NCBI GenBank assembly: GCA_965644295.1
Contig: CBFFRP010000644.1
Location: 1 to 39,701 of the forward strand
Direction: 5' to 3'
DNA from: Paraphysomonas bandaiensis
Taxonomy: Eukaryota; Protista; Chrysophyceae
DNA: 39,701 nt
Of this stretch, positions 1 through 25,540 are shown piece after piece (position 1 is the first letter of the stretch; every line of letters starts with the position of its first letter). The notes beneath the pieces are model-generated. The model was given only the letters and a program-made list of their open reading frames with translations, ran no database searches and was not told the DNA's origin. Position numbers and translations under genes: made by a program.

Positions 1-10
1 ACTCCTACAC

Positions 11-2113: not shown

Positions 2114-2164
2114 CGGTGTTGGGGAAGTTTCATAATACATGCATGCCCCTTCATGAGACTTCCC
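2111..2164 (+). promoter_or_regulatory. Putative stop-codon readthrough signal: UGA-CGG, 8-nt spacer, 12-bp stem-loop
   Basis: TGA at 2111-2113 is followed by CGG. No in-frame stop occurs between 2114 and ORF2. GGGAAGTTTCAT (2122-2133) pairs with ATGAGACTTCCC (2153-2164) with one G-U. Confidence 0.7.
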
Positions 2165-8100: not shown

Positions 8101-11100
8101 ACAGGCGACACCCAAACCCCCAGAGCCGAACCACAGCCTGGTGTCATGTACTACGACCTTCATATTCTCCACATGGAACGTAAACGGTAACCCCTCCAAC
8201 AACCCTGGAAAAATCGAAGCTATCCTACACTACATACGCACACACCAAATAGACTGTCTTTACCTGCTCGACGTCCGCCTGTCACAAAACCAGGCACTAT
8301 ACCTTGCTGACTACATCCAGGACCAGATTCCAGGGGCTCTTGTCTGCAACTTTCTCAACTCAACGCGGAAACAGGGCCCCAACGATCCGCACATGGGAGG
8401 AACTATTGCAGTGATCAGCGAAGCGTGGAAAGGAAGAGTCCGCCACACAGGCTCCGACTGCACTGGATTAGGGCTCATCTCCCGAATCGAATTTCACACC
8501 GGCAGACCTAACAGAGAAGAAAGATTCACTACCATAGGAGTGTACCTCCCCCCCAAGCCTGCGACCGATGGACCCTGCACACTATGGGCATCACTAAAAG
8601 CCTTCGGCAAGAATGCTCACAGGAACGGCGCCACGGGACCCTATGACATCCTCACGAACATCCTGTCCAAATGGATCACCAAAGCCAGGGCAAACAACCA
8701 CACAGTACTAGTTGGCGGAGATTTCAACGCCACCCTAGAGGGACAAACGGGTAAGAGGGACCTCAGAGGTTTAGCAAGATCCCTGCAGCTAACAGCCCCT
8801 CTCATACAAACCCTTGACCAGGAGGCACCATACCACACCTTTTACTGGAAAGACCGCGGCATCTCCAGAATAGACCATATACTACATTCTCCCCTTCCTA
8901 CACACTTTCATAACACTCGCAATGGATGCCACACATCTGATGCCATCGCTGCTGCACCATTTGATCACAGACCGGTCTGGATCCAGGTTGACATTAGCGG
9001 TACAGGACCAACCCTTCCCAAGGAACGGCACCGTCAGATTCCTCCACGGCTCAACATCAACCCTGCCGACCACGACATGGTAGAAGAATTCCAGACCCAC
9101 CTACACAAACATCACCACAAATTGTCCACGCTCCCCACGCACCCCCACCCCGCTGAAAACGCAGCCATAAAACTGGCGCTCCTCCATCGTATCACCTTAG
9201 AAGCGGCCCACGACACCCGCCACGCGGACAGAACCAAGAAAAACGGCATCCACGCAAAATGCCAGCGAAAACGATCCCGGTTCAAGGATGGCTTCTCCGC
9301 CGAAATGAGAGTCCTGCAAATGGCACTCCACCTGATTGTATATCTCAAACGCAAGCTCTTCACCAGATCCGGCCACCTACACCCCCGTGTCACCGACGCA
9401 TACTTATACAGCATCGTCCGGAGAGGAATCTGCAGATGGGAGCGCACCACTGCTGCACTTGACCGCTCATCAGAGGACCACGATCGACCGCCCACAGCCA
9501 TCATCCGGGCCGCGATAGACCCAAGGCAAATACTAACATGGACCACAACTAACGTCACGGGCAAAGCCTTCGACAACCTCCGTGACAGTCTCATGCGAAT
9601 GCTCCACGGGAGAGCCCGAGCTGAAATGAGGAAAAGGATGACCACCAGAACACACGCCCTCCAAGCCCAACTCGAAACACAACAGATACGCAAGATCCTC
9701 CAATCCATCGGACTAAAGCGGAAGCAGACACCAGCGCTCACCCGCCTCACCCTGGAGGACGGGGCCACGATCACCATTCCATCGGAGATACAGGAAGCCC
9801 TGAACAAGCACTTCACGGCACACCACGCATTCCCCAAAGGCATGGACCCCACCGCCCACAGACTACACTACGACGACAACTGGTGGCGCGAACTAACCGC
9901 CGGTGAGAACCTACACAATCCGCTCCACCCAAACTCCGCTATCCCGATACAACATCATTCCGGACTACGCAAACTATGCGAAACAAAGGTCGGCTCATCC
10001 ACCTCAGCAAAGATACAGGAAGCCCTCCGGCAACAAATTTCGATCCATGAGTTCCACTCCACACTTGATAATATGGCCAAGGACAAAGCACCCGGACCGT
10101 CCATGGTCACCACAAACATGATAAAAAGTTGGACCCCACAAGTCAAAATAGAAGTACTCGGTCTCCTACAAACGCTCTGGACTCACCGCCACATCCCACA
10201 CTGGTGGAAAGACAGAGTCATGACCCCTTTACTCAAGAAACCGGGAAACACCTCCCTCAAAAACTTAAGACCGATCGGTTTGCTCGAGGTTCTCCGTAAA
10301 CTGATGACACGCATTATTACCCACCGACTCCTCCAAATCTGGGAAGACGATGATGTCCTACACCCGGCGCAACACGGTTACAGGTGGAGACATGGAACAG
10401 ACACTGCCATTCTTCGTGTACTAGCGGCCACCGAACTGGCAAAGCTCACAGGAAACGCGAAAATATGCACCTTTTGGGACTTTCAAAAAGCTTTCGACTC
10501 CATTGCACCTAACCTCCTCAAACTCGCGTGGGCGAGACTTGGGGTTCCAGAAGACACGATCAGATGGCTCAGCGAACTCGACAGCGAGGGGCGCACCTAC
10601 ATCTGGACACCGCACATGGCTGACCACATCGATCCCAAAACCCTAGAGGAATTAAGTCAATCCGACGGTTCCTTCCTCCAACACCCCGACATGGGCTTCT
10701 CCGCCAACAGAGGCGTTACACAAGGCGGAACAGAGTCCACAGTCGCATGGATCGTCATCTTCGACATGATTCTCTGCTGGTCTGACCTTAAGGACGACAG
10801 TCAGGACAAAGCGTACGCGGACGACCTCTCCCAAATAACCAACTCCATTGCCACCGCGCAGATGAAGGCGGACAGACTCTCATCCTTCTGTGCATTCACG
10901 GGAATGCAGCTCGCCATAGCCAAAACGGAATGCATTGCAATAGGCTCCCCCTTTGAAGTTGAGGCCATGCTAGACACAGAGCCCACCATAACCATTAGAG
11001 ACTGGAACTGGAACCCGCACACCATCCCCATTAGAGCCACCACAGTCCCCACCAAATACCTCGGAGTTCTACTTCCGTTCTCCTCGAAGGACACCGACTC

Positions 11101-13309
11101 GCATGCCTGGTGTGTCGACTACGTCACCACCTCCGCAACACACCTACGCTACAAATGTGCATCCCCAGACTGTAAACTGTTAGTGCTTAACACACAAGTA
11201 CTCCCGACACTACTCTACAAGGCCACCAAAGCCTCCTGGACGTACGACAGATACCTGGACATAGACAAACTCCTTGCACGAGCAGCCAGGAAGGTCCTCC
11301 GACTACCCCCAGGATACCCCACAGCCCTCATCTATCTGCCCACGAAATACAAAGGACTTGGCCTGCGTAAGTTCTCCACATGGGCCCAGACCCAAAAGTG
11401 GCACACACTCCAAAGGGCCATCACCCTGGGGGGGGAACCCAAGCGAGCCGCCATATCCATCTTAAAACGTCACGATCACAATCGCCCAGACATCGACCTG
11501 TACATCACTAGCCTGGTCCAATGGGGACACCAGCTCGGAATTCGACTGCAGCCCCCATCCCCGGCCACGCCCCAATTCCGAGAAACCATCGACAAGGTCC
11601 AAACCCAACTCCAACTACACAACAATCATCCACACGACTTTCAAGCCATCTTCACTGATGGTTCCTTCACTCGCACAAACCTCTCTCCTGCTCATCTCCT
11701 CGGCGACGCTCACGTACAGCACGCAACACACTATGGGGGGGCAGCAATTGTCTGGCTCCCACCCAAAACCAACTGGAGCACAGGAATAACCAAAATCCTT
11801 CGACTTACAGCCCCCGAGCATACCTTACCCGGGATAACCCCATACACCTACGAGACCCTGGCAATGTCAGCAGCCCTCACGTTCTCGAAACTCATATCCC
11901 CCACCGTACCTATGTGCACCGACTGCCAAGCAGTCCAAACACGAACCACGGAAGCTCTCTCTCGTCGGCGGCGGGCCCTCGGCACAAAGCCCCAGGGCAT
12001 CTTTTACGAATGCCTCGCCACAGGAAATCACCGGCAGCGACCAATACGATGGGTCCGCTCCCATCCAGAACGCCGAACACAAGATCGGAACAACTGGACC
12101 TACAACGACTATGGCATTTACATAGCTGACGCTGCCGCCAGTGGAGAGTGGTCGGCGATTGACAAAATATTAGGCGGCACAAACTACAGCGTGGTCACGA
12201 CTGAGATCACACACCTCATCGACGAATTCCTCACTGCCGGCCAATGGCAATGGAGAAGATACGACAAATTCCTCCACACCGACTGTGGTCCCATGCTAGG
12301 GGATGTCACCGAACTCCAACACCAATGGGACCTCCACCAATACATCCTCACGCGTGACGGCACGTACCCCACAAGCGCAAGCCGAGACTCGCAGTACTGG
12401 ACACGCAGCGGCACCAGGCTCCCAAACAAACTCCATCCCCTCAAGCCCAATAATTCGCCCAACTGCTATGTCCCATTCCACGACCGCATCCGCGAAACTG
12501 CATATGTCTGGGACAAATCATACGCGATGGGCAGAAATAGGGCCAAGGGCAAACATGGAGACGAACTCACAACAGCAGCCAAATGCACAGACTGTGACCA
12601 CAACCTGGACAACATGGCGCATATGCTCCTCCACTGTCCACACCCTGAGATCGCCCAACTACGTGAACATGCCTTCCACACACAGCAAACCCAGCTTACA
12701 AAACTCCACGGGCAACGACAACCCATCCCCTGGTTCCAAACCGCCCTACAGAGACTGGCGAGGGCTGCCTGGGATCCCACCACACCCCAGGTTGAGAGAT
12801 ACTGGACCGGACAACTAACAGCCTCGCAACTGGCAAATGCTTTCGGACACAACATCTCCACCACGTTACACGACCACCAGTTCCATAAACTCGAGAAATC
12901 CGTCACCAAAGTCCTGCTCCCCCTCTACAATGGAGGAATAAACATGCTCAAAAACAGAGGATGTCGATTTCACAGTAACGATGCGACAGCAATGACACCA
13001 ACCTCGACTCATGCCAGCTCACAACAATGTCACACAAACCCTACCACCAACCCGACGATCCTCCAGCTACTTAAAGCAACATCCACCCCCAGAGCCGTGC
13101 CCCACACGAGACCCCGCCCCCAGCGCAAGCCTGCCAACCCGCTCCGGAGGCAGACAACACTCATCTCTGACAGAACCGCAACCACAACTAGTACTCCCAA
13201 ACCCTCCGCTAACGCACATCCACAGAATGGCACGTCACCCCCCACACCCCGACTCGCATGCGGATATGGACCACCAGATACACTACCCAAAGGACGACCA
13301 CCAGACTAA
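2153..13309 (+). CDS. ORF2 polyprotein, 3718 aa: SET, OTU-like x3, SET, AP endonuclease, reverse transcriptase, RNase H, CCHC zinc knuckle
   Basis: Uninterrupted ORF; motifs are listed in the domain features below. Confidence 0.95.
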   Translation: MRLPVQPTTHPPTSVRQPEAHTHPLLTRRSDPSQHTRLCPLHTLPNPPHQICNLTGSLTEEKQCRLHSGLSTALGHHLGSLQPLIPRITEGTAVDMLCGPLNSLFTAHGVATLTHHSFSLLHVHTLTAIIHITHLLNTAPARQWTVETSCRFSKNLFMAHSPPLYLDPPHHPQTHPHHTLHTPPHQTYNLTGRLTEAKPCSLHRGLSTTLGPHLYSSQPRITRINKRTAVDMLCGPLNSLFTAHGVVTQTYHLLSPLHVHTLTDILRITQLLLLITSLLHLNPPAQTQWTVEMACRNSMNLFMAHGLAPRIVHPHTPLPTTNTTQIHPLYSSSSSQYPLYSHMTHPSALRQGVGFSSDASGDGPKPKSQEVKRKQNAKKKERRKRLKRLFLQGEITDIPQHLKRRCLRDRRRRLQHHSRVWEAHIQHHLRKRTAPGQTIAPAVFNILDQRPTPWLMRTRQPLRPTSESAHPDAVDYYRAHPNGDTRFQILRGCQKPNITCDNSQRGVWAVENIPTGTPLFPYVGHYITGTPSASTYLLQLREEEKYIQAEPAMVDYGYVAFRKPSDPLPKRIPRAFGACCNTIPVEDLGTRVYNARIRPRDENDLSDCIFIDACADIHPQEEILLDYGDGHLISRTNKTPDECLRAYRAYLRTAEAPDTHPPSIRRSPRLRTTATATHNPRHPQGSTTTKASAVTSRKQPRAHTPPKAAFVDDTTEQWTFYSPSGLIAMTLYPSELQRLLELSRASATRSTIKTLVATCLKKGEICTARKYTTAEVNTTPGNGFCGIGALGPLLPEYSTIHSTRPTKGPLLNPDDPIDNEYLQELLNYSQAVIISLSDQIIEEVGDRAVLDFLLELIDAYRIALSADVPTKTGLPPQYWAQTDALMLMAETHGIHIRIWQDPTLPTEPVFLNPNWATWASHHRTFLPDTERKTPKDIFCCNQHFFLDLREPAEAELHRLMELLPHLYADRLAPSLPLVPAHTHAARTQQGPEYASDSSGDGPSTHPHLHKHPPTQNPPRPRQFGPGYSSDDSGDGPRKRRPRKPPNEPQPPKTPGHTHKPDAHTTTPAPDTTRQPPGRRRHSLTLADYFPPIPPPKADTRSTPADQPTLSPTEQTSIANTLDIPPSQDRPTPRVSSSPPPLLPQPARREATPFTSSLTNAWTAYDNTHRVAVSLREDLLRHIHNTVMAGTTNWSQLLQIIHDDANYIQVANFDWEDDYRATIARGLDALAATYQIHTAPSPGHYPNVPLQTAEDAKALHRFIAHLQRICLASGQAHTSRLLHTLQCAHKALTTMPPQRCALSADHHMEITDVQTLLQLLRTNFRLWRETSGSLSSGWVMLHNHHNHDPKAATTHNVAVTNKHYFLLRIPDIGSKLDEAHCRAKSALSHFIHHAAQRTPQPHPRKEHQPQAALPTPTPLTISAGHLTLSTTQRGARAITARLVEPGTRNSPRTAIQTAGRVLRVHITTASVQAAHRIPANGYCAYGTLYRLHTLCVGMRHTANHWNLDLQKPEHRLHLGHWLSQIRTAALDSPHCTPTILSKTAHAIHSLTVKHSPTYATPQDIQHWLSVRELHILSSYIGPVTTWTADGDNITIVGIPDAPITHSPAWTSDELRDAITDDRPHLVLHDAHYYHLNPRGLAAELDNALLDLEAAFLCPQLYRPPSPTELSTGNTAPPAPLPPKQPQQSITHSTTPWPPTPTNCTTPNLPRRGPHVSTPLTSPGKYSQHRTSTTAGSSPPDAPPRIPHLRDVPGARRAKGKKARNPTPVPTRKQPARTARTTSSYAEDPDEVQTHAIYRPRATFNTLLQTAHPPLPLTWDTTLRYKVLVGTADTVTKGNALYAGEPIPAHTIISEYTGHRLPITEARSTGYTSDYLVQDAKGTFAIDARDKRSKSILCAAGYINDPLQARAANVEFHTKKDKIYIRTTRNIATHEELLVHYGYRYWQHPKWPLEILLQAREAYADDVEFCTQEWQDLIASKQSHAQATPKPPEPNHSLVSCTTTFIFSTWNVNGNPSNNPGKIEAILHYIRTHQIDCLYLLDVRLSQNQALYLADYIQDQIPGALVCNFLNSTRKQGPNDPHMGGTIAVISEAWKGRVRHTGSDCTGLGLISRIEFHTGRPNREERFTTIGVYLPPKPATDGPCTLWASLKAFGKNAHRNGATGPYDILTNILSKWITKARANNHTVLVGGDFNATLEGQTGKRDLRGLARSLQLTAPLIQTLDQEAPYHTFYWKDRGISRIDHILHSPLPTHFHNTRNGCHTSDAIAAAPFDHRPVWIQVDISGTGPTLPKERHRQIPPRLNINPADHDMVEEFQTHLHKHHHKLSTLPTHPHPAENAAIKLALLHRITLEAAHDTRHADRTKKNGIHAKCQRKRSRFKDGFSAEMRVLQMALHLIVYLKRKLFTRSGHLHPRVTDAYLYSIVRRGICRWERTTAALDRSSEDHDRPPTAIIRAAIDPRQILTWTTTNVTGKAFDNLRDSLMRMLHGRARAEMRKRMTTRTHALQAQLETQQIRKILQSIGLKRKQTPALTRLTLEDGATITIPSEIQEALNKHFTAHHAFPKGMDPTAHRLHYDDNWWRELTAGENLHNPLHPNSAIPIQHHSGLRKLCETKVGSSTSAKIQEALRQQISIHEFHSTLDNMAKDKAPGPSMVTTNMIKSWTPQVKIEVLGLLQTLWTHRHIPHWWKDRVMTPLLKKPGNTSLKNLRPIGLLEVLRKLMTRIITHRLLQIWEDDDVLHPAQHGYRWRHGTDTAILRVLAATELAKLTGNAKICTFWDFQKAFDSIAPNLLKLAWARLGVPEDTIRWLSELDSEGRTYIWTPHMADHIDPKTLEELSQSDGSFLQHPDMGFSANRGVTQGGTESTVAWIVIFDMILCWSDLKDDSQDKAYADDLSQITNSIATAQMKADRLSSFCAFTGMQLAIAKTECIAIGSPFEVEAMLDTEPTITIRDWNWNPHTIPIRATTVPTKYLGVLLPFSSKDTDSHAWCVDYVTTSATHLRYKCASPDCKLLVLNTQVLPTLLYKATKASWTYDRYLDIDKLLARAARKVLRLPPGYPTALIYLPTKYKGLGLRKFSTWAQTQKWHTLQRAITLGGEPKRAAISILKRHDHNRPDIDLYITSLVQWGHQLGIRLQPPSPATPQFRETIDKVQTQLQLHNNHPHDFQAIFTDGSFTRTNLSPAHLLGDAHVQHATHYGGAAIVWLPPKTNWSTGITKILRLTAPEHTLPGITPYTYETLAMSAALTFSKLISPTVPMCTDCQAVQTRTTEALSRRRRALGTKPQGIFYECLATGNHRQRPIRWVRSHPERRTQDRNNWTYNDYGIYIADAAASGEWSAIDKILGGTNYSVVTTEITHLIDEFLTAGQWQWRRYDKFLHTDCGPMLGDVTELQHQWDLHQYILTRDGTYPTSASRDSQYWTRSGTRLPNKLHPLKPNNSPNCYVPFHDRIRETAYVWDKSYAMGRNRAKGKHGDELTTAAKCTDCDHNLDNMAHMLLHCPHPEIAQLREHAFHTQQTQLTKLHGQRQPIPWFQTALQRLARAAWDPTTPQVERYWTGQLTASQLANAFGHNISTTLHDHQFHKLEKSVTKVLLPLYNGGINMLKNRGCRFHSNDATAMTPTSTHASSQQCHTNPTTNPTILQLLKATSTPRAVPHTRPRPQRKPANPLRRQTTLISDRTATTTSTPKPSANAHPQNGTSPPTPRLACGYGPPDTLPKGRPPD
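2270..3075 (+). repeat. Imperfect tandem duplication (~408-435 bp period); each unit holds three related stem-loops
   Basis: GGACTGCTGTGGACATGCTGTGCGGACCACTTAACAGTCTGTTCACAGCCCATGGCGT is identical at ~2424 and ~2832. Hairpins lie at 2326-2378, ~2429-2472, 2581-2639, 2734-2786, ~2837-2880 and 3016-3072. Confidence 0.9.
3662..4045 (+). other. SET-like domain 1 within ORF2
   Basis: RGVWAVENIPTGTPLFPYVG ... ACCN ... YNAR ... IFIDACADIHPQEEILLDYG matches the SET motifs GxGxxA, EYxG, NH and EELxxDYG; the NH motif is diverged. Confidence 0.8.
4481..4990 (+). other. OTU-like (papain-fold) cysteine protease domain 1 within ORF2
   Basis: TPGNGFCGIGAL (Cys 4505-4507) ... YWAQ ... IRIW ... NQHFF (His 4979-4981), resembling the OTU PxDGxC / W / H[FY] motifs. 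Confidence 0.7.
5768..6250 (+). other. Degenerate OTU-like domain 2 (His box kept, catalytic Cys motif absent)
   Basis: LSADHHMEITDVQTLLQLLRTNFRLWRE ... VAVTNKHYFLL aligns by eye with LPPQYWAQTDALMLMAETHGIHIRIWQD ... IFCCNQHFFLD of domain 1. Confidence 0.5.
6572..7054 (+). other. OTU-like cysteine protease domain 3 within ORF2
   Basis: IPANGYCAYGTL (Cys 6596-6598) ... HWLS ... HLVLHDAHYY (His 7040-7042). Confidence 0.7.
7655..7984 (+). other. SET domain 2 within ORF2 (compact, no pre-/post-SET Cys clusters)
   Basis: GNALYAGEPIPAHTIISEYTG ... AIDA ... AGYINDP ... ANVEF ... IYIRTTRNIATHEELLVHYGYRYW. Confidence 0.88.
8159..8995 (+). other. Apurinic/apyrimidinic-like endonuclease (EEP fold)
   Basis: TWNVNG, GVYLPP, GGDFNA, TF...SRIDHIL, DHRPV. 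Confidence 0.93.
10078..11075 (+). other. Non-LTR reverse transcriptase domain
   Basis: KAPGP, LRPIGLL, QHGYR, DFQKAFDSI, RGVTQGG, YADD (10814-10825), KYLGV. Confidence 0.97.
11645..12139 (+). other. RNase H domain
   Basis: IFTDGS ... YETLA ... TDCQAV ... WVRSHPE ... IADAAA gives the D-E-D-D set plus His. Confidence 0.88.
12584..12637 (+). other. CCHC zinc knuckle
   Basis: CTDCDHNLDNMAHMLLHC = C-x2-C-x8-H-x4-C. Confidence 0.85.
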
Positions 13310-13324
13310 ACTTAAAACAAGGGA

Positions 13325-13361
13325 TGGTTGCACCAAGGTGCTTGCAGCAATGCACAAGCAG
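13325..13361 (+). promoter_or_regulatory. Conserved 3' UTR stem-loop with GNRA tetraloop (putative RT recognition element)
   Basis: TGGTTGCACCAAGGTGCTTGCAGCAATGCACAAGCAG is 32/37 identical to the reverse complement of 22729-22765, with a compensatory A-U to G-C change. Confidence 0.75.
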
Positions 13362-13459
13362 TCCCGAGATAAAGCATTTCATATTTTGTGTTACACTTTT
13401 AGTCTAAAGTAATAGCTAGATAAATGCAACAAGTTCTCTCATGTAATAATCAGATCTAT

Positions 13460-15403
13460 TTATATGGGTAACTTCCTCAAGTGTTCCCTCATTTCCGGCA
13501 ATACTTTGGCCATCTCCACCTGCTCCTCACACCTCTGCCGCAGCTCCGCTGTGATCTTCTCCACCACCCCTGGCGTCCTCATGCACCATTGGCAGAACTC
13601 CCCATAGCTCTTAGACCTCGCCTTCTCCACCTGCTGACTAGGGTCGACCTCTTCCTTGGCCTCTGCTTCCCTCCCCCTTCTCATGCTAGTGCGAGCCTCT
13701 TCCTCTCTTCCTGTCATACTCTCCTTCTCTACGGTCAACCAAGTCTCCTCATCACTGCTCACCTCGTCTGGATACTCTTCTCCCCATCGATCCATGTTCG
13801 GTCTTCCTTCCCCTCTCATCCACCTAACCTGATCTCTATAGCTTTTCAGAGGCGGTCCTATCTCCCTGAGCTCTCTCAATGCTACCTGAATGACCTCCTT
13901 CTGCTCCTCCAGATACATCAACCTCTCTGCCAACCTATTGCTGGTCGTGAGATAGTCCAGCAGCTCCGGTATCTTGTCCCTCTCCTGGCTCAGTAACTCG
14001 AAATCCATGTCTCGGCGCCCCCTGGTCCTTGCATGTTGGATGATCCCCAGCCACGACACATAGAACTCTCTTTGTATATCTGGTACTCCCTCCTTCACTG
14101 CAGCCATCTTCAGCTCCTCCATCAATCTATCCAATACCCCCCTGTACGTGCCTTCCGTCATCCTCTCTCTCACATTCTGTATCTCTCTCCTCACCAGCCT
14201 CTCACTCTGCCATACATACTTGTCTTGATGTTCTGGTTCCACCGGCTTCACCAGATGTAGCAGCATATTCCTCTGAAGCATGTTCCGGGTCTCCTGTGAT
14301 AGTCCCACGGGTTTCGAGGCTACCTGAATGTCCTCCTGCATCCATCCTCCATCTCGTCTGCTCTCCTCCCCATCTGTTCTCCGTCTACCACTGGACCTAC
14401 TTCCCATACTCCACTCATCCTGTGACAACATCTCCTCTCCTCGTCTTCTTCTCCCGCCCCCTACTCCCATTGCAGCCAACTCCTCCATCACTGGTGTACT
14501 TCGATACTCTTCCCCTATCTCCCTTCTGGCTGGTGTCTTTGGATAGTCGTCCCCTCTTTCTCCTCTATGAGACTGCCAATGCTCTGCTCCTGTGGCCTCC
14601 CTCCTACTCGTCGGTGTCTGCCCCTCTTCCCTCATTATCTTCCCTTCTCTCCGACCTCCTCTATACCAGCATACCCAACACTGTGTAGCATACTTCGGCG
14701 CTGATCCTGCCTTCAGTACTGCCTGGCAGCTCCTACACTTACGATCAAATATGAGAGTCTCTGTCCGTGGATTCCCTCTCATCTCTATCACAGGCTGATC
14801 TCTTGCTTTCTCTGTCGCATACTTCTGACGCACCCACACCCATGATGGAATATCTGCAGGCCTGCTCTCCCTCTCTTCCTGCTCCAATTCCCCTAGCCGC
14901 ATCTTCTCACTAAACAATTTCCTGGTGGTTTCCATACCCCTCTCTCCGGTCTCTCTCGCTCGTACAGGCATTCCTGTTAGTGGGTCTCCCTCGTCTGACT
15001 CTTGATAGTCTGGAGCCCCACTCCAATCTCTGTACAGTCTCTCCATTGTGGCCCCCATCCCTGGCCTGCCCTTGTTGCTGTGTCTACTCCCGTCCCCACG
15101 GTTGTAGACTGGTTCCTCCAATGGGGCCGTCCCTTGGCCGGTCCCGGTATCCCCCCATGCCTCGGAGAGTAATGTGTCCCGTGCACTGTCCACATCGTCC
15201 TCCCATTGCTCTGCCCTTCGCTCTTCCCCCCTTTGGGATCGTTGCCATGAAATTCCGCTGCCCCCTCTTCGTCGTGGCTGATCAAGTCCACTGGTTCGCG
15301 AGGGCAGCCCACGTTGTCCACCACATGAGACGATCGGAGATGTGGGGGTCCTTGGCAGAGGGCTTTGCCTTGTTGATGCATCAGTTGGGTACCTTGTGCT
15401 CAT
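13460..15403 (-). CDS. Orphan 647-aa Arg/Glu/Gly-rich protein with a C-x2-C-x15-C-x2-C motif and a helical C-terminal half; probably mobile-element derived
   Basis: Intronless ORF with a purine-rich sense strand. CRSC...CWVC lies at 14669-14737. The stop codon is 4 nt from the LINE 3' terminal motif. Confidence 0.6.
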   Translation of the reverse strand: MSTRYPTDASTRQSPLPRTPTSPIVSCGGQRGLPSRTSGLDQPRRRGGSGISWQRSQRGEERRAEQWEDDVDSARDTLLSEAWGDTGTGQGTAPLEEPVYNRGDGSRHSNKGRPGMGATMERLYRDWSGAPDYQESDEGDPLTGMPVRARETGERGMETTRKLFSEKMRLGELEQEERESRPADIPSWVWVRQKYATEKARDQPVIEMRGNPRTETLIFDRKCRSCQAVLKAGSAPKYATQCWVCWYRGGRREGKIMREEGQTPTSRREATGAEHWQSHRGERGDDYPKTPARREIGEEYRSTPVMEELAAMGVGGGRRRRGEEMLSQDEWSMGSRSSGRRRTDGEESRRDGGWMQEDIQVASKPVGLSQETRNMLQRNMLLHLVKPVEPEHQDKYVWQSERLVRREIQNVRERMTEGTYRGVLDRLMEELKMAAVKEGVPDIQREFYVSWLGIIQHARTRGRRDMDFELLSQERDKIPELLDYLTTSNRLAERLMYLEEQKEVIQVALRELREIGPPLKSYRDQVRWMRGEGRPNMDRWGEEYPDEVSSDEETWLTVEKESMTGREEEARTSMRRGREAEAKEEVDPSQQVEKARSKSYGEFCQWCMRTPGVVEKITAELRQRCEEQVEMAKVLPEMREHLRKLPI

Positions 15404-15659
15404 ACCCGCGGATAACTTCTTACTACGTGCAATGACGTCTGATCTTACTAGGTGCCTGTTAGATGCTATTAAACAGACCCTTAAGCTCTGATAATCGTAT
15501 AACTATCAATTATTAGAACTATCCTTACTTATGCTCTCATAACCTTAAAGAGTGACTCACATAGCAATCTTGCACTTACAAGCTGGCTCTACACTTAAGC
15601 ACCCATATCATACTCATCACCATCGTATCTCTACAGTTATCGTAATGCTGTCCCTGTAG

Positions 15660-15750
15660 TCGTACTTATCTACTACTCATCGTACCTATCTACTACTCAT
15701 CGTACCTATCCACTACTCATCGTACCTATCTACTACTTATCGTACCTCAT
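15660..15750. repeat. Minisatellite, 20-bp unit CGTACCTATCTACTACTCAT x ~4.5
   Basis: Units start at 15661, 15681, 15701, 15721 and 15741. Confidence 0.92.
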
Positions 15751-16646
15751 ACCCACTTACATACGTACTCACGTACTCAAGTACATACGTACACACCTAC
15801 CTCCACCCAACAGCTACCCTACCACCGTATACTCACTGTAGTCAGGATACACTCACCCCACGATATATGGGACTACATGCGGATTTGTCACAGATGTACT
15901 ATTCACAGTTTACCGTTAAGCGCATATTTCTGTCACCCACTCGAGGGTGGCAACTTCTGATTATCCCGATTGCTATATCCCTGCGATTGATTCATAGATT
16001 AAGTTGTCTCACCAATGCGCCTCAACGACAGCAAGCACATTGAACCAAACTGCCATCGAACCAATCATATGCTTCCAATCCCATTCCTACCTGCTGCTGG
16101 TGATAATTACTATCAGTTACGGTTATTTCCGGTATATCACTGTATAAACCGTATAATAGGAAGTGAAACGTCAAGAAATGGAAGCGTGTCCTCCAATAAG
16201 AAGCGCATGTGGCCTGCTGCTGGATGTATATATCAGTGTGGTCTACAGCAGTGTATTCTACTGCACTATGCGTATGTATGTATGGCACTGCGTATGTATG
16301 GGAATCCCTGTAGAGTATGCTGCTGTTTTATGGACTGCTAGAGAAGGAAGGAATAACATCACTCACATATACGAGCAACTGGAGAGGTCGATCACTGTGC
16401 CACTTGTCAGCCTGCTTCATTATATACTGAAGAGGTATACACATGAAGTGAGATTATTCCTGTCTGTCATCGTATTAAAGGGATTGACTGTCAGTGAACA
16501 GCACATACACTGAGGATGGATATAATGGACATGCTGTAAACTACAATTAACTATTAGTGGCTCTTATCTCTACGCAACAGAGTAATTAAAGAAGAGATTA
16601 TCATATTCTGATTAAGTAGTGAGGGATTAAAGAAACATTTGCAACC

Positions 16647-19600
16647 ATGATGTGGTTTATTAACCCCCACTCCCATTCCCACAATGGTAATCAAGGGGGC
16701 AATGGGAGCTCTGAAAATGTGGGAGGAAGTCGTAAAGATAGGATTCCTTCGCGAACAAGGGAAAAAGATAAGGAAGATCCGAACTCAGCATCGAAGAGTA
16801 TTGATTATTTAATTGACAAGACTAGCGCCAAAGGCGGTGATATACAAGCTGTCTCGAATGCAGAACAATTTCGAGTTAGTACGCAGAAATATTTGGCGTC
16901 GTCATGGATTGGAAGACTGTACACCAACTTTTTCCTTGCATTGAGTGTATTATCGTGCATTCAGTACATATATGAAACTTACTTGCGTGATGATCGTGAT
17001 AGGGTAAGCCGTTCAAATGAGATATTTCTATTGAATTAACAATTTTTTCAGACCATCATACAGAATCTTAGAATTACTGAGCTTTGTCTAGCCGCGATGT
17101 TTGGCTTTGATTGGTTATTTTCACTTTTTCTTGCCGACCATCGTTGGGAGCACTTTTGGAGGTGTGTCGTTATCAGCTTCCTATGCTTGATTTTAATTTT
17201 AATATTAGTTTCTTTGCAATGGTTGATTTTGCTACTGTTATTCCAATATGGGTAACATACATATTCTTTCCTGAAAAAATCGATTACACTGAGATTGAAA
17301 CTTTTGGAGATGTGGTCAACTATACAATGCGAGGTGCTGCGACATTGCGTATATTACGAGCCCTCAGGGTGCATCGGAAGTTGAACTTCATTGACGACGA
17401 AGTGAAACGTTTTCTGTATTCTATGTTACTTTCAGTGATCACAATGATACTGTTCGGTGAGTGTGAATCTCATTGAGTTGAGCTTATATTTCATTTTATT
17501 AATGTCATATAGATTCTGCTATCATTCGATTTCTGGAGCTCCAAGAGCAGCAGTATCAATTCCACACGTGGATGTACTATGTCGTTGTCTCCATCTCTAC
17601 CGTTGGCTACGGAGATATATCTCCCTCAAGTGACCTTGGTCGCTTCGCTGCTATGTGTATTATATGCTTCGCTATTATATTCGTGCCACAACAGACCAAT
17701 GAACTGATAGAGAAGATGGGAATTTTGTCTGTGTATGCACGCCGTCGCTACAAGCCTCGAGCCAACACGCAGCACGTAGTGATTTGTGGGGATCTTCGAA
17801 CCACATTTCTAAATGAATTTTTCAATGAGTTATTTCACGAAGACCACGAGAATATGAATCTTAATGCTGTTATATTGCAACCTGGTAGGTGTGATTGACA
17901 ATGCTATGAAACTATGTGTGCATTTCGGCCAAATGTGATATCTGTAGTGTCCATTCATATGTTGAGAACTTGTCTGATAGTTTGACGTGTATACAGAACC
18001 ACCTTCGAGTGATATGCATGAAGTTTTAAGAGATCCTTTATTTGGAATATTCGTGCATTATCTTGAGGGTAGTCCTCTCAACAACAACGATCTGTACCGT
18101 GCCAAAGTTGAAGAGGCTGTTGCTGTATTTATAATGGGGAACAAATTTAGTGTAAACCCAGATGAGGATGATGCCAAGACTATACTCCAACAGTTCAGTA
18201 TTAAGCGGTATATTGAAGCAAATGAGGTCCAAAGCCCGCTATATTGTCTACAGCTTATTAGACCGGAGAATAGGCGACATCTAGGCACACATGAGGACGA
18301 AAACCCGAATGAAATTGTTGTGTGTTTAAACGAAATGAAAATGGGCTTATTAGCAAAGAACTGTGTGTTTCCTGGCACCAGCACGCTGATATTCAACTTG
18401 CTGACGTCATTTGCTGATAATGGTGACGATGACGAAGAGGAAGGGGCAGTATGTAACAGGTCGCGGTCGAATTCCAAATCATCTCGCCAGAAGTCTCCCA
18501 AGAGTGGTGAAGCTTTTGTTGAAGTTGAAAATGAGAGTGATGACTCCTCTATTGATAGTGAAAAGTCTTCGAACGGTGGACCCTATTGGATGAGTGAGTA
18601 CCAGAAAGGGTGTGACTGGGAAATTTATACCACCGATATGGCCGACGTTTTTGAGGGTGCAAAATTCATTGATGTTGCGAGCAGACTGTACTCGAAACTT
18701 GGCGTTGTACTCTTTGCCCTCCGTGTAACGGACACAGAGTCTGTGCAGGCACGAGTGAGGGTTGTCCTAAACCCTGCGGACTACATCATTCCTAATCAAG
18801 CAAGATATCGTGTGCAGGGCTTTGTGATAGCGAAAAATCAAACGTCTTCTGATCTGTCTTTCCAAGGTGGAGAATCAGTTACTAATTTGATGGGGTCAAT
18901 ACAAAAGGTAACCACAGCTGGAACGAATATGATCAAACGACAATCGTTTTCATTGAGGGGGGAGAGACAGTCGATTATGGTAAAGCGAGCATCGGTATTA
19001 CCGAGTGGTGTGAACAAAACTGTGAGCAGCGGTGGTTGGCAAACTCTGCTGTCCACTCAAGTAGATCATAGAAAGGAGGAGGAAGAGTATCAAACAAAAC
19101 AAGAGCGCATCCAAAAGATGGAAGAAGAATACCTTCATGCGAATTTTTTCATGCGTGATTCTCCAGCGAATTTGGCACAATGTACTGTGAACTCGTCATT
19201 GCAAGATGAGTATCCCTTTATCAAAGATCATATGATTGTAATTGCGAAGGGCTTGAGCAATCTGTACGATTTCATTCGACCATTACGTGCCAAATATCTT
19301 GGAAAGCTTCGTCATATTGTGCTATTGTTTCCCTTCGATATTCCGATTGCGGTATGGAGGCGTATATCAGTGTTTGAAGGAATTCTTTATGTGCGGGGTT
19401 CTCCACTGGAAGAATCAGATATAAAGCGAGCTGGAGTGTTTCGAGCCTCTCAGGTTGTAGTGTTAGCTGACCCGGATGCTAATTCGAATTTAGATTCGAG
19501 TGGAATTGATGCTCTCATTGATGCGGACGCGATTTTTACTTATCATTGTGTGAAACGACTCAACGAGCACGCTCACATTGTTATAGAAATTGTGCGGCAT

Positions 19601-20623
19601 CAGAATGTTGGATATTTGGACATCAGTGCTGACAGCATGGATATAGACTATAAATTTACTCCGAATTTTGCGGCTGGTACACTCTTTACATCCAGCATGT
19701 TGGACTCAGTTGTTTGTCAGGTAATGAACATATATAAATCCGCCTCCCCGTTTACTTTCTATTTTTAGGTGTTCTACAATCCTCAAATCATACGAGTATT
19801 GAACAAGCTAATCAGTGGTACAGACCACATTGAATCCAATGGCAGCGGTGGACCTGATTGCAGGCCTATCCTTGTACAACAAAACTCTCGCAGCATGATG
19901 GGTATGAAGTCTCTGATTGGTAGTTCTCTGTACCAAGTCCCTGTCCCTCCTGAATTCGCAAAGAAGACTTATGGAGAATTGTTCCACCACTTTGCCATGA
20001 AGGACGGATTGTGTATCGGCTTACTTCGTGGGGTTTTCTCAGGACTGACGGTGGGCCCCTGTTCGAATCGTATGGAGTATGTGTTTACAAACCCTAGTCA
20101 AGACACCAAGCTCTTCAAATGCGATCGTGTGTTTGTGCTATCACAACGCGTGTTGACAAGCACCAAGTCAACAGCTAAGGTATTTACTTTTTGGGTGTAT
20201 TACTGTATCTGATATATTCTACAGGAGGTGATGCAGCAATATATGCGTGCAAATTTGAAGAACATAAGAACAACAAGGGATAGTGCATCGGAGTCAGTGG
20301 CTTCAGAGGCCAATCTTGATGGGGTAACAGATGGTCAACGATCTGTGGAGAAAGCTATTGCAGAACTCTCTGCAGATATTGCAAAGAGATTTGATGACAT
20401 CGTATCAATCAAAGAAGATGTAAAATCCATCAAGGAGTCTGCTCTTTCAAAGGTCCCACACCTCAGTGGCCATACTTCAAAATCAAGGGTTCGAATTCAT
20501 GAAGCAATTGAAAAGCGAAAAATGGGGCTTACAAAGGCAAATCCGGATAGACAACAGAGTTTTAACTCGAGAACACTTGCCAATTTTTCAATAAATGGAC
20601 CACCAAGTGAGAATGAGTCATAA
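16647..20623 (+). CDS. BK/Slo-family voltage-gated K+ channel with two RCK domains (about 7 exons)
   Basis: S4 LRILRALRVHRK, pore STVGYGD, RCK1 HVVICG / YLEGSP, RCK2 DHMIV / YVRGSP. GT-AG introns at about 17004-17051, 17162-17208, 17457-17512, 17885-17996, 19721-19768 and 20180-20224. Confidence 0.93.
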
Positions 20624-21421
20624 CTTCGATGGAAATGTGAAGGTGATAATGCAGTGTGTGACTTTTTTTATGACCATGTAGTTTGTTGTTCAATGGTAAG
20701 ACATTGGATGTATTCATACCGTATGGATTCAGTTGGCTGGGATAGCAGTTTGAAGCTATTTGAATCCAATAGGTTTGGTTGTACTATTCATTTTTGTATA
20801 ATAGTTAGCAACTCAGTTGGCATTAGTTTGACTGTTGAGTTATGAATAATCTATGGTATGTGGCTGAAGTACTTATTTCGTAATATAAGCTATGATATGA
20901 AGTGAATTATGTATTGTTGCTCACACAGTAGTAGCATTCCTTTGCAGCGGTCAAATATATATAGACTTCGTAACATTTTTTCCACTATATCCCGGATTCA
21001 CAACATAGATTTCTTAAATACTATATAATCTAGGCATGGGCCGGTGTCCGCTAACGACCCATTAATGAGTGCCAATTAACATTACAAGTAATGGTATTGT
21101 TGTCATCCCCATATAGGAGATTTACTGACATTGGAGTGAAAGCTTGGTGTGATATAGTATACGGATGTATACTACCCTATACAGTTGGTGTATGCTGTGT
21201 GGTGTGGACAGCAAGCTACAGTATGACAGCAGTATACAGTAGTATACTAGTGTACGGGGTATGATGACAATACGGTGCAGTATATGTGCAGTTCAATATG
21301 TATGTTGACAATACAACGTAGTGTATGCACAGTCCAAGATGCACAGTGGATTGGTGTAGGTATATATTGAAAGTCTTATTATTAGCAATAGGCGATAAAA
21401 CCTTCACCAACTTAGTAGCTA

Positions 21422-22630
21422 GTTGAAAATCTGATTATTAAGAAGCGCAAGCTTGTGCGTTGCCGCGACCAACCTAACAACTCGCGCGACACTATGCATA
21501 ACATGACTCTCATCTAGTTACTATTGCATGCACCGACAAGTGCTCAACTATACAACACGATTTAGTTAGCTACATGGGCATACGACGAGTTGCGTGTTTA
21601 AGCCGGATCATACGCTCCTGCCCAATCTACTTGTCCTAACACAAACAACTTGCGGTCGGTGTCTTCGGCATATGTCTCCTGTATATGCGGCAGATCTTTA
21701 GGGCCCTCTTCAAGGTGGTGTTCACAGCAGCAGGTAGTCTGGAAGGGAGAATAAAGTAGCTCTATAGCGCCGGGTCCTCCCACGGTCACGAAGCGGTCTC
21801 ACTGGTGCAATTTTGCACACTGACGCATGAAACAGACATCTACCAAAATCTGTTACAAATTCAAGCTGACTCCAATGTCTTCCCTCCATTGTGTGCACTC
21901 GTCCAGCACATGCATCCACCTTGCACTCTTCTCCCGAGTGACTTACACTAGTAGGAAACCGTGCACCTTCCCCGCTCGGATGAAAACCTACTAAGCAAGA
22001 ATAACATAAAAGCACCACAAATGTACCTGACACTGCTTGGAGAAAACAGTGCCAGAGCCTTGATATAATCTCAATGACCTGGGTCAGGAGAAACCAAGAC
22101 TAGGCAGTAGACGTGTGAGAAGACATGACAGGTCTAATCACATCATTGCCATTGCCATGCATCCATGAGGAAAGTTTGACGCATTACCTCGGTCATTGGC
22201 CACACAGATACCGAATAATGTGAACTCATACTCAGCATCAATCACTCAAAGCAAACGCAGGGAGCAAGCAGAATGTTGATATACCTGACATCTGCTGACT
22301 TCAGGTGTTTTGAGTTCTTAAGGTGAACATCCCGGATGCTTAACTTCAGCAGGCAGCCCAATACCCCGGCTACCCTTCTGGTGGGCCCTGTCCCGGATGC
22401 CCTTGAGGTGGGCCCATTCCCGGATGCCTGTTTATTCGTCAGGGCCCAAAGACGTCTACACAAGTGACACTTATTAGTGTCCCTTGTACCACACAAGCAT
22501 TTGGCTATGAGTGGGCAGAACAATATCTGCTGACTATGTTTGCGGCTCACGTTAGTTTCCCAGAGAGAATCTCTCCGGTACTTATCCCCCAGAACACCAC
22601 GAAAAGGTGCGAGTCCGACTTTGTTGAGGG
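21422..22630 (-). mobile_element. Nested 1.2-kb non-autonomous retroposon with the same head, ~840 bp unknown body and a related tail
   Basis: 13-bp direct repeat AACTTAGTAGCTA at 21409-21421 and 22631-22643 (TSD). GNRA hairpin at 21451-21470. TAATAATCAGAT on the minus strand at 21429-21440. Confidence 0.8.
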
Positions 22631-23099
22631 AACTTAGTAGCTATATGAATGCTAGACATACTAGTTAGACCTCTACCTGTAACTAATCAGTACAAACTCT
22701 ATTATTCTACTATTTAACACTACGAAAGCTGCTTGTGCGTCGCCGCAAGCACCAAGGTGCAACCACTTCCGTTCTGAGTTCTTAAGGTGAACATCCCGGA
22801 TGCTTGACTTCAGCAGGCAGCCCAATACCCCGGTTACCCTTCAGGTGGGCCGTGCCCCGGATGCCCTTGAAGTGGACCCATTCCCGGATGCCTGTTTATT
22901 CGTCAGGGCCCAAAGACGTCTACACAAGTGACACTTATTGGTGTCCCTTGTACCACACAAGCATTCGGCTATGAGTTGGCAGAAGAATACCTGCTGACTA
23001 TATGTTTGCGGCTCACGTTAGTTTCCCAAAGAGAATCTCTCCGGTACTTATCCCCCAGAACACCACGAAAAGGTGCGAGTCCGACTTTGTTGTTGAGGG
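22311..23099. repeat. Two highly similar copies of a ~320-bp head (22311-22630 and 22775-23099)
   Basis: TGAGTTCTTAAGGTGAACATCCCGGATGC ... GAGTCCGACTTTGTTGAGGG occurs twice; each copy has three internal CCCGGATGC sub-repeats. Confidence 0.95.
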
Positions 23100-23614
23100 T
23101 TGGTGTAGGTATAGTCTGTGGTAGTGTTAGTGATACATGTCATTATTATCACAGATATCTTCTGATAAAACAAGTTAATAGCACTATCGTTTACTATCCA
23201 CATATGGCTTGTTATTGCCTTACAACAGGTATATTGTTACAATGACTAACTAGATAATATTGCTCATAATAGATAGTGTGGTGCCACCTTAATTTCTAAT
23301 TAGGTCTTAAACAACAGATTATGAATTGTAAATTCTAGATGACCTATAACTACACACTATACACTGTGTTCTCGCTCGCCACATTGTGTTGAGTTTTGAT
23401 GTTTGTGAGCAATTACAAGCTGTATTTCTAAGGTATTGGAATTATGACCGTTACTTGAAGAATATAGTAGTGGTTAACAGTATTACATGAATCAAAAACT
23501 ACTGCTATGATAGAAACAATAGGAGTGAAACTGAAATATACTGACCGTCTAAAATATAAGATCGTATAAAATTGGTTGGTAGTATATATTATATATACAC
23601 AATGAATTTAGTGG

Positions 23615-23730
23615 TGAAAGTCCTATTATTAGCAATAGACATTTTAGAGTCAGTACTTAACTCTGATACCCTACTATTTAACACTACGAAAGCTGCTTGT
23701 GCGTCACCGCAAGCACCAAGGCGCAACCAC
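23615..23730 (-). mobile_element. Third tail copy of the same retroposon family (5'-truncated or diverged)
   Basis: TGAAAGTCCTATTATTAGCAATAG matches 21368-21391. CTACTATTTAACACTACGAAAGCTGCTTGTGCGTC..GCAACCAC matches 22707-22766. No TSD found. Confidence 0.72.
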
Positions 23731-23976
23731 GTTTGCTCTATCACCCAAAGCAGACGCAGTGAGAATGCAATAATAAGAATACCCGAATAGCTGGCTTATA
23801 CATAATCAACCACAAGATTGATTTCAACGAAACGGATTGCATCTTTACATCAATTTCCAGTGATTTTATTATGACATAATTTTACACCGAAGATACTCTA
23901 CAAACCCTTCAATAACTAACACTAAAATCAGATTATAACTTTTCACATATACGCTAAACTCCAAGAAGGTGATAAT

Positions 23977-25540
23977 TTAATCTTCCCATTTCATGATTAC
24001 CTGAGAATTTGCTAAACCTGCATCTTCGATTTTCATTTCTAGCTTGGAATTCAAACTCGAACGAGGAAATGATGTCAATAAATCGAACGGCTTATTGGAA
24101 CGTTCTTCTGGTAAGATGCTATTCACATAGGCATACATGTTCTTGACAAGGTCTGACTTCATAAATCGGCGAACAGTAACCATACTTCCGGGCTTGGGGG
24201 CATTGGGAGGCGAAAACAGCAGTCGAAATGATACTTTCACTGCCCCATCATCACCTGATATCAGTGTTGTCAATAATAAATATAATCATGGTACACGCAG
24301 ATGCACATATCCCAGAGCACAAATGCAGTGGTCCGTAATATATACTGTACGTGTACACTACATACGAAAAAATTACCACCTTCTTCAGGTTCTGCTGTCA
24401 CATCACCATATTTTGGTTCAGCCGACACTATTTCAATACTTTCGATCAATGATTCACACGGAGAGCTATCATTCGCAGTTTGAGACACCCCAGCCACCTC
24501 GGAAAATTTCGATTCTGCCTCAGAGATCTTGCCGTTGCCGATTTTTTGTCGGTGTACGCTATTCATAAGGCTCTTGCGGACAACTGGGGCTCCAGTGCTT
24601 TCAAGATCGTTGTCATCCAGAAACTCGACAAGCATGAATGTTAAGTCCCCTGAATCAATGACCCCCTACAGTAATATATAGATATTAAATCTATATATAT
24701 CACTATATATTATCAGAAAAATAAGCAACAATTGAATTTAACGCCAATCGAATATAAATTAAACTACTCGAGTCATATCGTACATTTAGAGCAAACAAAA
24801 GTCCTCCTGTTCTGGGATCCATCACTCCTACCATAGGCAAATCCGTAAGCTGATACATCCCAATAAAACTTTGGCCATCTTGAGATGTCGATCCTCTCTG
24901 CCAAAATAAAAAATTCATACGCACTAAAGACACTAAAGTCTCGTTTGTCCACACGTCACGGTTGAGCAAATGAGAACTGAATTCGTTGTGATCTTGAATA
25001 TTAACTAGAATCCATTTCTTGTCCTCCATCGCAGCTTTCTTCGCCTACACATAACATCATACAATTTAAATAATTTGATACGCATGATAGTGAATCTAAT
25101 TAATTAATTTGTATATTAACACAGTTGAGATGGTTGAGTGTAATACCTCGCTCAAGTTGCGAGGAAATGACAAATGGTTCGGGGGAGGAAACATCCAATC
25201 TACATTCGAAGCTTCAACTCTTGATAGTGTCATATCTCTTTCCTGTTGAAAAATACTTCGTTGATCGAGCAAGCGCTCTTGTTTGACAGGATCCGCCGCA
25301 CGAACAGTTGGAGAGGAGGGCTGCTGCCCCTCACTCTCAAGTATTAATGAGTAGGCAATACTGATATCCCAATTAGCCACCTGAATAGAGGATCACAAGG
25401 TTATGAATTGAATCATATGAGTGTATAGTGACCTGAAGGTAGTGCCTAGCTGTGGAGGTATCTAGACCCGTCATATCGACAAATGAACATAACAGGGCAC
25501 TTTCATCTTCACTGCGCTGAGAGTCTGATACAGAATCCAT
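23977..25540 (-). CDS. UBX-domain p97/Cdc48 adaptor, UBXN7/PUX7-like (UBA-like, UAS, UBX; about 5 exons)
   Basis: UBA-like FVDMTGLD..ARHYLQVANWDI, UAS KWILVNIQDHNEFSSHLLNRDVW, UBX RRF...FDLLTSFPR...AGLANS. ATG at 25540-25538; GT-AG introns. Confidence 0.88.

Follow-up and report, generated by a model that had tools for sequence, protein, structure and literature searches.

The window analysed here, a 39,701-nt stretch of the genome of the chrysophyte Paraphysomonas bandaiensis (contig CBFFRP010000644.1), contains a long interspersed nuclear element (LINE), named LINE-A, whose 3' untranslated region (UTR) carries two short conserved modules. Both modules also occur in non-coding retroposons of at least two kinds whose bodies are unrelated, namely a group of short interspersed nuclear elements (SINEs) designated S1, S2 and S4, and the family S5. 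Module 1 begins ~12 nt past the stop codon of the LINE, and comparative modelling suggests a ~47-nt fold in which an outer helix P1 (4–7 bp) and a short P1b enclose two hairpins, P2 and P3. Module 2 is a terminal TAATAATMAGAY motif followed by 10–15 AT-rich bases without poly(A). Together, the elements with these modules number some 1500 copies or more. Judged from the sequences, shared tail modules on unrelated non-coding bodies, combined with target-site duplications (TSDs) and the lack of poly(A), are the pattern expected of a stringent LINE whose partners are parasitic. Module 1 is probably the RNA tag by which the LINE reverse transcriptase (RT) selects its templates, the SINEs being mobilised in trans; we hold this view with moderate confidence.

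The initial annotation of the window had drawn attention to a hairpin with a GNRA loop at four sites, all of which lie where it had placed them. The LINE-A site on the plus strand (13325–13361, TGGTTGCACCAAGGTGCTTGCAGCAATGCACAAGCAG) begins 16 nt past the TAA stop codon, and two minus-strand sites are identical to it at 32 of 37 positions (22765–22729, GCG-GCGA-CGC) and at 30 of 37 (23729–23693, GCG-GTGA-CGC). The fourth site (minus 21470–21451, GGTCGCGGCAACGCACAAGC, GCG-GCAA-CGC) had been listed along with the others; it keeps the GNRA hairpin and its 3' flank, but the first hairpin is missing and the match is partial (13 bits, E 0.06). The loops of the four sites read GCAA, GCGA, GUGA and GCAA, closed by A-U in the LINE and by G-C at the remaining sites. 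The accompanying end motif, TAATAAT[ACGT][AG]GA[CT], was found at or within 1 nt of the annotated positions (plus 13444–13455; minus 21440–21429, 21384–21373 and 23631–23620), and poly(A) follows none of its copies.

This sharing of hairpin and end motif is far beyond chance. The pattern GCTTGCNNNNNNGCACAAGC occurs 1494 times in the 62.5-Mb genome and its reversed control not once. A covariance model of the module, a check that the annotation had itself proposed, was run unfiltered over the whole window and returned 83.6, 74.8 and 65.0 bits at the three full sites, with no other place above 13 bits. In the genome scan, scores are given for the 150 best matches, and these all fall at 79–88 bits, as do S1 and S2 copies. 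The position of the motif relative to element 3' ends had also been proposed for checking: its roughly 1500 genomic occurrences are always 10–130 nt upstream of ends that lack poly(A), and the module stands upstream of the end motif by 85 nt in LINE-A, ~110 nt in a sister lineage, LINE-B, 126 nt in S1, 63 nt in S2 and 10 nt in S4. A curated Rfam family or a known ribozyme was ruled out as the identity of the module, the whole window giving no Rfam match at gathering scores and the interval 20600–24200 one chance-level match only at E ≤ 1.

The second open reading frame (ORF2) of LINE-A encodes two SET domains (aa ~505–628 and ~1836–1940), an apurinic/apyrimidinic (AP) endonuclease, a reverse transcriptase, an RNase H-like FTDGS motif downstream of the RT and a C-terminal CX2CX9HX4C knuckle (aa 3478–3495). 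Its last residues, GPPDTLPKGRPPD, are identical in LINE-B, a lineage 50% identical in protein, and its stop codon is the TAA at 13307–13309. The contig begins inside the element, so that its 5' end and 5' UTR are not included. At the other end, 30 LINE-A copies terminate in ...TAATAATCAGATCT(A/T)TTATAT, a slightly variable AT-rich end without poly(A), and the 3' end of the window copy is therefore placed at ~13465. The TAATAAT motif, which had been annotated as terminal, proved to be internal, since LINE-A continues for ~10 nt past it (...CAGATCT(W)TTATAT). A minus-strand open reading frame (ORF) of 647 aa (13460–15403, no Pfam match) has its stop codon (13460–13462) within the last bases of LINE-A; either an insertion of the LINE into the end of this frame or a frame end contributed by the LINE may account for the overlap.

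The three small elements of the initial annotation are truly non-autonomous and retroposed, because they are non-coding, flanked by TSDs, multi-copy and without a tRNA or other Rfam head. That part of the earlier claim, together with the lack of poly(A), stood, but the three are not independent borrowers of the LINE tail: they are subfamilies of one SINE lineage, and one is nested in another (Table 1). S1 is 514 nt long, starts with CCCTCAACAAAGTCGG at 23099 and is bounded by a 13-bp TSD; its tail is broken after ...TAGCTACTAAGTT (22631), resumes at 21408 and ends at 21364. The end motif at 21384–21373 belongs to this S1 element (the 22765 copy), and that at 21440–21429 to the nested S4. S4 opens with 320 nt of S1-type head, which match another genomic S1 copy (locus L050) at 96.6% identity; next come ~830 nt of unique, non-coding sequence and then a short tail, and the longest ORF of S4 has 103 aa and a GTG start. 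S2 is an older subfamily with an S1-type body, an extra ~85-nt linker and a GUGA loop, the copies of which are ~83% alike and end in ...TTCACTACTA; no TSD was resolved for the window S2 copy. S1 copies are 94–96% alike genome-wide with a sharp 5' end, and the S5 family joins an unrelated ~85-nt head to the same tail.

TSDs of 10–16 bp were recognised by eye at ~20 of 29 S1 copies. The ~29 S1 ends and ~30 LINE-A ends stop alike at ...TTATAT or ...CAATAT(AT), with no A-run and an AT end of varying length, and the flanking repeats of S1 and of LINE-A copies consisting of the tail only are similar in length, roughly 10–17 bp. Several TSDs overlap the element-terminal TAT/ATA, that is, microhomology. 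ARAGORN found no tRNA in 20600–24200 and Rfam no small-RNA head, so a tRNA- or small-RNA-headed SINE transcribed by RNA polymerase III was rejected. BLAST comparison of S1 and S4 with 13.4 kb of the LINE (window 1–13470; the LINE 5' UTR lies beyond the contig) gave no sign that the SINE bodies are deletion derivatives of the LINE, only the module and a 17-nt terminal match being shared. As a separate observation, the S1 head (CCCUCAACAAAGUCGGACUCGCACCUUUUCGUGGUGUUCUGGGGGAUAAGUACCGGAGAGAUUCUCUCUGGGAAACUAACGUGAGCCGC; minus 23099–23010 in the window, and S1 copies in L032–L060) can be drawn by eye as a nested double pseudoknot resembling that of hepatitis delta virus (HDV), with its own P1 CCCUCA/UGGGGG, P3 CACC/GGUG, an 8-bp P4 hairpin and P2 CGG(A)CUC/GAGCCG; the HDV-type models of Rfam gave no match to this head at E ≤ 1.

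The C-terminal 299 aa of LINE-A recur at 134 genomic places, where identity ranges between 37% and 100%. Of eight tails examined, from copies 37–71% identical to this C-terminus, the two closest (70–71%) have a LINE-A-type module and the other six (37–55%) are of LINE-B type (CAAGGGACGGTTGCACCATGGTGCTCGCAGCGATGCACAAGCAGTCCCGAGA ... CTCATGTAATAATCAGACTTTC(C)TATAT). Over the last 185 codons, LINE-A and LINE-B share 50% of protein and 63% of nucleotide positions, and their spacers (74 versus 89 nt) are ~51% alike, which is noise level, whereas the modules agree at 48 of 52 positions and the terminal CTCATGTAATAATCAGA at 17 of 17. Such islands of near-identity within diverged sequence fit neither recency nor recombination of the whole tail and suggest selection on the module and the terminus. 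In a further lineage, LINE-C, known from pattern matches only, the outer helix CCGGAAC/GUUCCGG pairs perfectly over 7 bp and the junction reads CAAGUAG, and the tails go on ...GCGCTAACAGATAG...AAATAAAGAAT (from a loose pattern search, mostly noise, with 80 nt per match). At least three LINE lineages carry both modules in the same order. The pattern of an ORF end (PPD-stop) followed by the module was found at 153 genomic sites, and 99 of the first 100 have a LINE-type P2 loop, CAAG or CAUG; the single CUUG case was discarded as a chance neighbour. A LINE ORF fragment followed by a SINE-type module on contig C372 was also set aside, its coordinates being best read as an S1 inserted in a LINE fragment.

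As to which LINE moves the SINEs, the SINE 3' end (AAGACTTTCAATAT) is nearer to that of the sister lineage LINE-B (CAGACTTTCCTATAT) than to that of the window LINE-A (CAGATCTATTTATAT), the compared termini being TAATAATAAGACTTTCAATAT, TAATAATCAGACTTTCCTATAT and TAATAATCAGATCTATTTATAT, respectively. Because of this likeness of end motifs, the abundant LINE-B lineage, rather than the LINE-A copy of the window, appears to be the likeliest current driver of S1. The SINE P1 (CGGAA/UUCCG) resembles that of LINE-C. The earlier proposal of a cis element for the RT family of the window LINE is consequently tenable in a broad sense only.

In the mechanism that we propose, the LINE ORF2 protein would bind module 1 to choose its template, as in "stringent" recognition, and module 2 would set the RNA 3' end on the nicked target. 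The terminal AUAU would anneal to TA-rich target DNA, reverse transcription would start there, and the short elements would be mobilised in trans by virtue of carrying both modules. The template-tag role is suggested by analogy with stringent LINEs, the ORF2 proteins of which bind a cognate 3' stem-loop common to their partner SINEs (PMC4176376, PMC1636434).

The modules might instead serve transcript 3'-end formation, or RNA stability or export, and not RT recognition, which we regard as unlikely. TAATAAT would then resemble a poly(A) signal that directs cleavage 11–16 nt downstream, exactly where the element ends, the module would contribute to RNA stability or processing, and the SINEs would keep both modules since any retroposed RNA requires a defined 3' end. 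In LINE-A, S1, S2 and S4, AATAAT indeed precedes the element end by 11–16 nt, the usual spacing from a poly(A) signal to its cleavage site. In addition, the S4 family is represented almost in full by contigs of poly(A)-selected metatranscriptomes, over 21455–22631 in one run and 21455–22291 without a difference in another, with no contig cover of the unique flank 20900–21211 in the same metatranscriptomes, which is compatible with transcription of the S4 family. However, the public runs containing the window, which are marine, are stored as contigs that show neither RNA ends nor strand nor expression level and may hold DNA. Moreover, the integrated copies have no A-tail at all, and if the template were polyadenylated, the RT would still have to begin exactly upstream of the A-tail, which again amounts to specific recognition; tail-only copies of 148 nt starting at the base of P1 are also left unexplained. 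In the same metatranscriptome runs, loose ends connect the module with the S5 head.

The fold proposed for module 1 was examined in 74 copies aligned gap-free over 56 columns (column 1 corresponding to window position 13316) and in 11 lineage representatives aligned separately. P2 has the form GCAC-CNNG-GUGC, and P3, (U)GCR-GNRA-YGC(A), is the hairpin of the initial annotation. Each of the four P1 sequences (Table 1) pairs in the same register, and the core that they enclose is invariant. Among the representatives, standard pairs occupy 93.3% of cells, compared with 24–42% when the 3' partners are slid by 1–3 columns, and six pairs are changed on both sides, compared with 0–3 when slid; in the 74 copies, 88% of cells are paired versus 30–53% slid. 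Columns 5/51 read G-C, C-G, A-U and G·U, including a transversion flip from G-C to C-G, columns 6/50 form the series A-U (S2), G·U (S1a) and G-C (S1b and the LINEs), and columns 7/49, 8/48 and 9/47 each alternate between G-C and A-U. Unguided RNAalifold analysis of the 11-row alignment gave P1 (5–10/46–51), P1b (12–14/42–44), P2 (15–18/23–26) and P3 (29–31/36–38), and the single-sequence minimum-energy folds of LINE-A, LINE-B, S1a and S1b have the same architecture. S4 is without P2, yet an enclosing helix of very different sequence, GCGCGAG/CUUGCGC, surrounds its GNRA region. P1 and the core C-R[GNRA]Y-G are the firm parts of the fold. Individual dead copies show broken and wobble pairs at the rates expected from decay, and their double changes at 5/51 fall on CpG sites and are not above chance.

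The main covariation therefore sits in the outer helix P1, and not in the closing pair of the hairpin where it had originally been noticed. The change of that pair from A-U to G-C is real (31/36 is G-C in six of the 11 representatives and A-U in five) but amounts to a single event separating the LINE from the SINE lineage and would not be significant alone. It is also true at the sequence level that every P3 loop is GNRA, with GCAA in LINE-A, LINE-C and S4, GCGA in LINE-B, S1 and S5, and GUGA in S2, under A-U or G-C closing pairs; as evidence this is weak, the differences being transitions at loop positions 2 and 3 only.

Several observations weigh against a folded template tag. The folding energy of the module is ordinary for its composition (z −0.6 to −1.3, with 20–47 of 200 shuffles folding as well), and thermodynamics alone therefore lends no support. 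The covarying lineages number only ~4–5, mostly differ by transitions and come from one species, and P1 was first spotted by eye in the tested sequences, which gave it an advantage over the slid controls. P2 never covaries, and an alternative inner fold, one long hairpin GCUUG...CAAGC around CR-GNRA-YG, is 92% paired and fits equally; either this extended hairpin or P2 plus P3 may form, neither being preferred, and four lineages have C in place of U28, which costs either inner model a pair. S4 has transposed without P2, with a module of 13 bits and a minimum-energy fold that lacks the GNRA hairpin. With respect to the partner, no autonomous LINE with SINE-type P1 and P3 occurs among the first 100 of the 153 ORF-end-plus-module sites; since no true SINE-type tail is among the sites listed, an autonomous element with the SINE version was not found there, and the partner LINE is missing if the helices are read by sequence. 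When JGI metagenome contigs were scanned with a protein pattern for the LINE C-terminus, no relative was detected, and a DNA-pattern scan of the same resource for the module core gave more than 120 stretches, of which the 80 inspected were all unrelated, mostly bacterial coding sequence, and none had an upstream GGTTGCACC.

Some of these points would also suit a module that is read as primary sequence, either as a linear protein-binding site of ~30 invariant bases or as something merely inherited from the LINE tail, its helices being incidental. Invariance across all lineages at 22 of 56 columns, with 7 more nearly so, agrees with such a module, the invariant columns including the whole P2 stem and, save one position, the P3–P1 junction strand; so do the lack of covariation in P2 and the weak folding z-scores. 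It is difficult to reconcile with four unrelated P1 sequences that pair in one register, the transversion flip included, with slid controls that pair at 24–42% only, or with the quite different sequence of the S4 enclosing helix, and we consider it quite improbable.

Support for the module and terminus as a unit comes from the tail-only copies of LINE-A. Among the best 40 of 309 candidates scored, a sample therefore biased towards long matches, eight start at query positions 18–22 (window 13317–13321), at or just before the 5' base of P1, and none starts within the 17 nt before those positions. Four such copies were inspected: three have clear 15–17-nt flanking repeats, which include a few bases possibly of the element's own TAT/ATA end, the fourth has a 7-nt match only, and all four have 2–6 extra bases at the 5' junction. 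A ~148-nt unit of module, spacer and terminus has therefore repeatedly been found as a complete insertion. That the main role of the module is as an RNA processing site or a reverse-transcription roadblock, with cleavage or RT release at the 5' base of P1 yielding this unit, is very improbable: the eight clustered starts, the lack of starts at query positions 2–17, the flanking repeats and the extra junction bases would agree with it, but no Rfam ribozyme or other family matches the module, the junction sequences by our own reading fit no known self-cleaving core, the module is internal in the SINEs with no sign of cleavage there, and the sample of starts is biased as described.

Returning to the template tag, the same copies allow a bolder version of it, offered as a speculation with rather little expectation that it will hold. 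The module and end motif would form a self-sufficient ~148-nt retroposition cassette, and the 5' base of the three-way junction would be a preferred end point through release of the RT at its bound protein or through an RNA cut. If this were true, no natural template for this RT would be smaller than the cassette, which would also be a portable handle by which RNAs could be directed to the LINE RT.

The module is a candidate, defined at the sequence level, for the signal by which an unusual LINE family of a marine protist, with a giant SET-bearing ORF, recognises its templates. It also explains the ~50-nt core common to roughly 1500 or more non-coding repeats in a 62 Mb genome. The natural compensatory variants, with four versions of P1 and two closing pairs of P3, provide a ready mutagenesis series, and the covariance model, which marks element 3' ends and their orientation across the assembly, is useful for annotation.

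Table 1. Coordinates of the LINE-A, SINE and tail-only features, and outer-helix sequences by lineage (helices as predicted)
Feature	Position	Strand	Remarks
LINE-A ORF2	2153..13309	+	3718 aa, stop-free
LINE-A 3' UTR (tail)	13310..13465	+	~156 nt, without poly(A); end placed where ~30 genomic copies cease alike
LINE-A structured module	13320..13366	+	P1, P1b, P2, P3
LINE-A P1	13321-13325 with 13361-13365	+	GGGAU with GUCCC
LINE-A P1b	13327-13329 with 13357-13359	+	
LINE-A P2	13330-13333 with 13338-13341	+	loop CAAG
LINE-A P3	13343/4-13346 with 13351-13353/4	+	loop GCAA, 13347-13350
LINE-A terminal module	13438..13465	+	CTCATGTAATAATCAGATCT plus variable AT-rich end; first 17 nt identical in LINE-B
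S1, 5' part	22631..23099	-	body, module (22774-22719, 84 bits) and part of tail
S1, 5' TSD	23112-23100	-	ATACCTACACCAA
S1, 3' part	21364..21408	-	separated by S4 insertion; ends ...GCTAATAATAAGACTTTCAATAT
S1, 3' TSD	21363-21351	-	ATACCTACACCAA
S4	22630 to 21422	-	1209 nt, inserted in S1 tail
S4 TSDs	22643-22631 and 21421-21409	-	TAGCTACTAAGTT, 13 bp; the 21409-21421 copy is also S1 tail sequence
S4 GNRA-hairpin candidate	21466-21451	-	enclosing 7-bp helix 21487-21481 with 21451-21445
S4 end motif	21440-21429	-	
S2 copy, 5'-truncated	23609..23772	-	module 23738-23683 (75 bits), end motif 23631-23620; ends ...TTCACCACTA
Tail-only LINE-A copies, ~148 nt	L015, L019, L020, L023 and four more places		start at or just before GGGATGG
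P1 of LINE-A, LINE-B			GGGA(U/C) / GUCCC
P1 of LINE-C			CCGGAAC / GUUCCGG, from pattern search
P1 of S1, S5			CGGAAG / CUU(U/C)CG or CUUCUG
P1 of S2			CGAAAG / CUUUCG
LINE-C places	C161:29723-29798, C661:19194-19251, C412, C138, C249, C75, C80 (three places)		pattern matches

Elsewhere in the window, a plus-strand ORF of 2706 aa (30908–39028) contains eight head-to-tail repeats of 1107 bp (369 aa), 99–100% identical, at 31268–39316, and the first 697 aa of this ORF have no Pfam match. Just upstream of it, an inverted repeat (30499–30614) has 49-nt arms that are 94% complementary and separated by 18 nt. Five to six tandem copies of the 20-nt unit TCGTACCTATCTACTACTCA occupy 15640–15759.

The closest known systems are eel UnaL2 with UnaSINE1 and zebrafish ZfL2-1 and ZfL2-2, stringent LINEs of the L2 clade in which the ORF2 protein binds a conserved stem-loop of the 3' tail that is shared with SINEs (PMC1636434, PMC4176376). 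As in those systems, the LINE and its partners here share the 3' tail only, a conserved folded tail element is followed by a short terminal sequence without poly(A), and changes in the stem are compensatory whereas other positions are fixed. The folds differ, a single bulged stem-loop in UnaL2 and ZfL2 contrasting with a predicted three-way junction of an outer helix and two hairpins, one of them GNRA. The position differs as well, since the element of UnaL2 and ZfL2 lies at the very end and the present one just past the stop codon, 85–126 nt from the end. Instead of tandem pentamer repeats, a fixed TAATAATMAGAY terminus and a short AT-rich run close the element. The layout of AP endonuclease, RT, RNase H and CCHC knuckle, the giant SET-bearing ORF and the marine protist host also set the present LINE apart.

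The LINE–SINE tail-sharing rule of Ohshima and Okada describes SINEs with tRNA, 5S or 7SL heads and LINE-derived tails (reviewed in PMC3747384). The elements described here resemble such classical SINEs in having an unrelated body with a LINE-type tail, TSDs and copies that outnumber the LINE by roughly 10:1, and differ from them in that no tRNA head (ARAGORN) or Rfam small-RNA head was found and that S4 is 1.2 kb long. In the trypanosomatid pairs ingi/RIME and L1Tc/NARTc, the LINEs end in poly(A) and the partners are internally deleted LINE derivatives. Non-coding elements that depend on a LINE, and one head common to several non-autonomous subfamilies, are features in common with these pairs; unlike their partners, the bodies here have no similarity to the 13.4 kb of the window LINE, whose 5' UTR is off the contig. 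A shared tail without a shared body, a conserved fold with compensatory change, the lack of poly(A) and similar TSDs, which are the sequence features of the stringent LINE class, were all found. The LINE and SINEs described here are thus, as far as such features define the class, a further case of the known stringent LINE–SINE partnership, and the general picture of LINE–SINE biology is unchanged.

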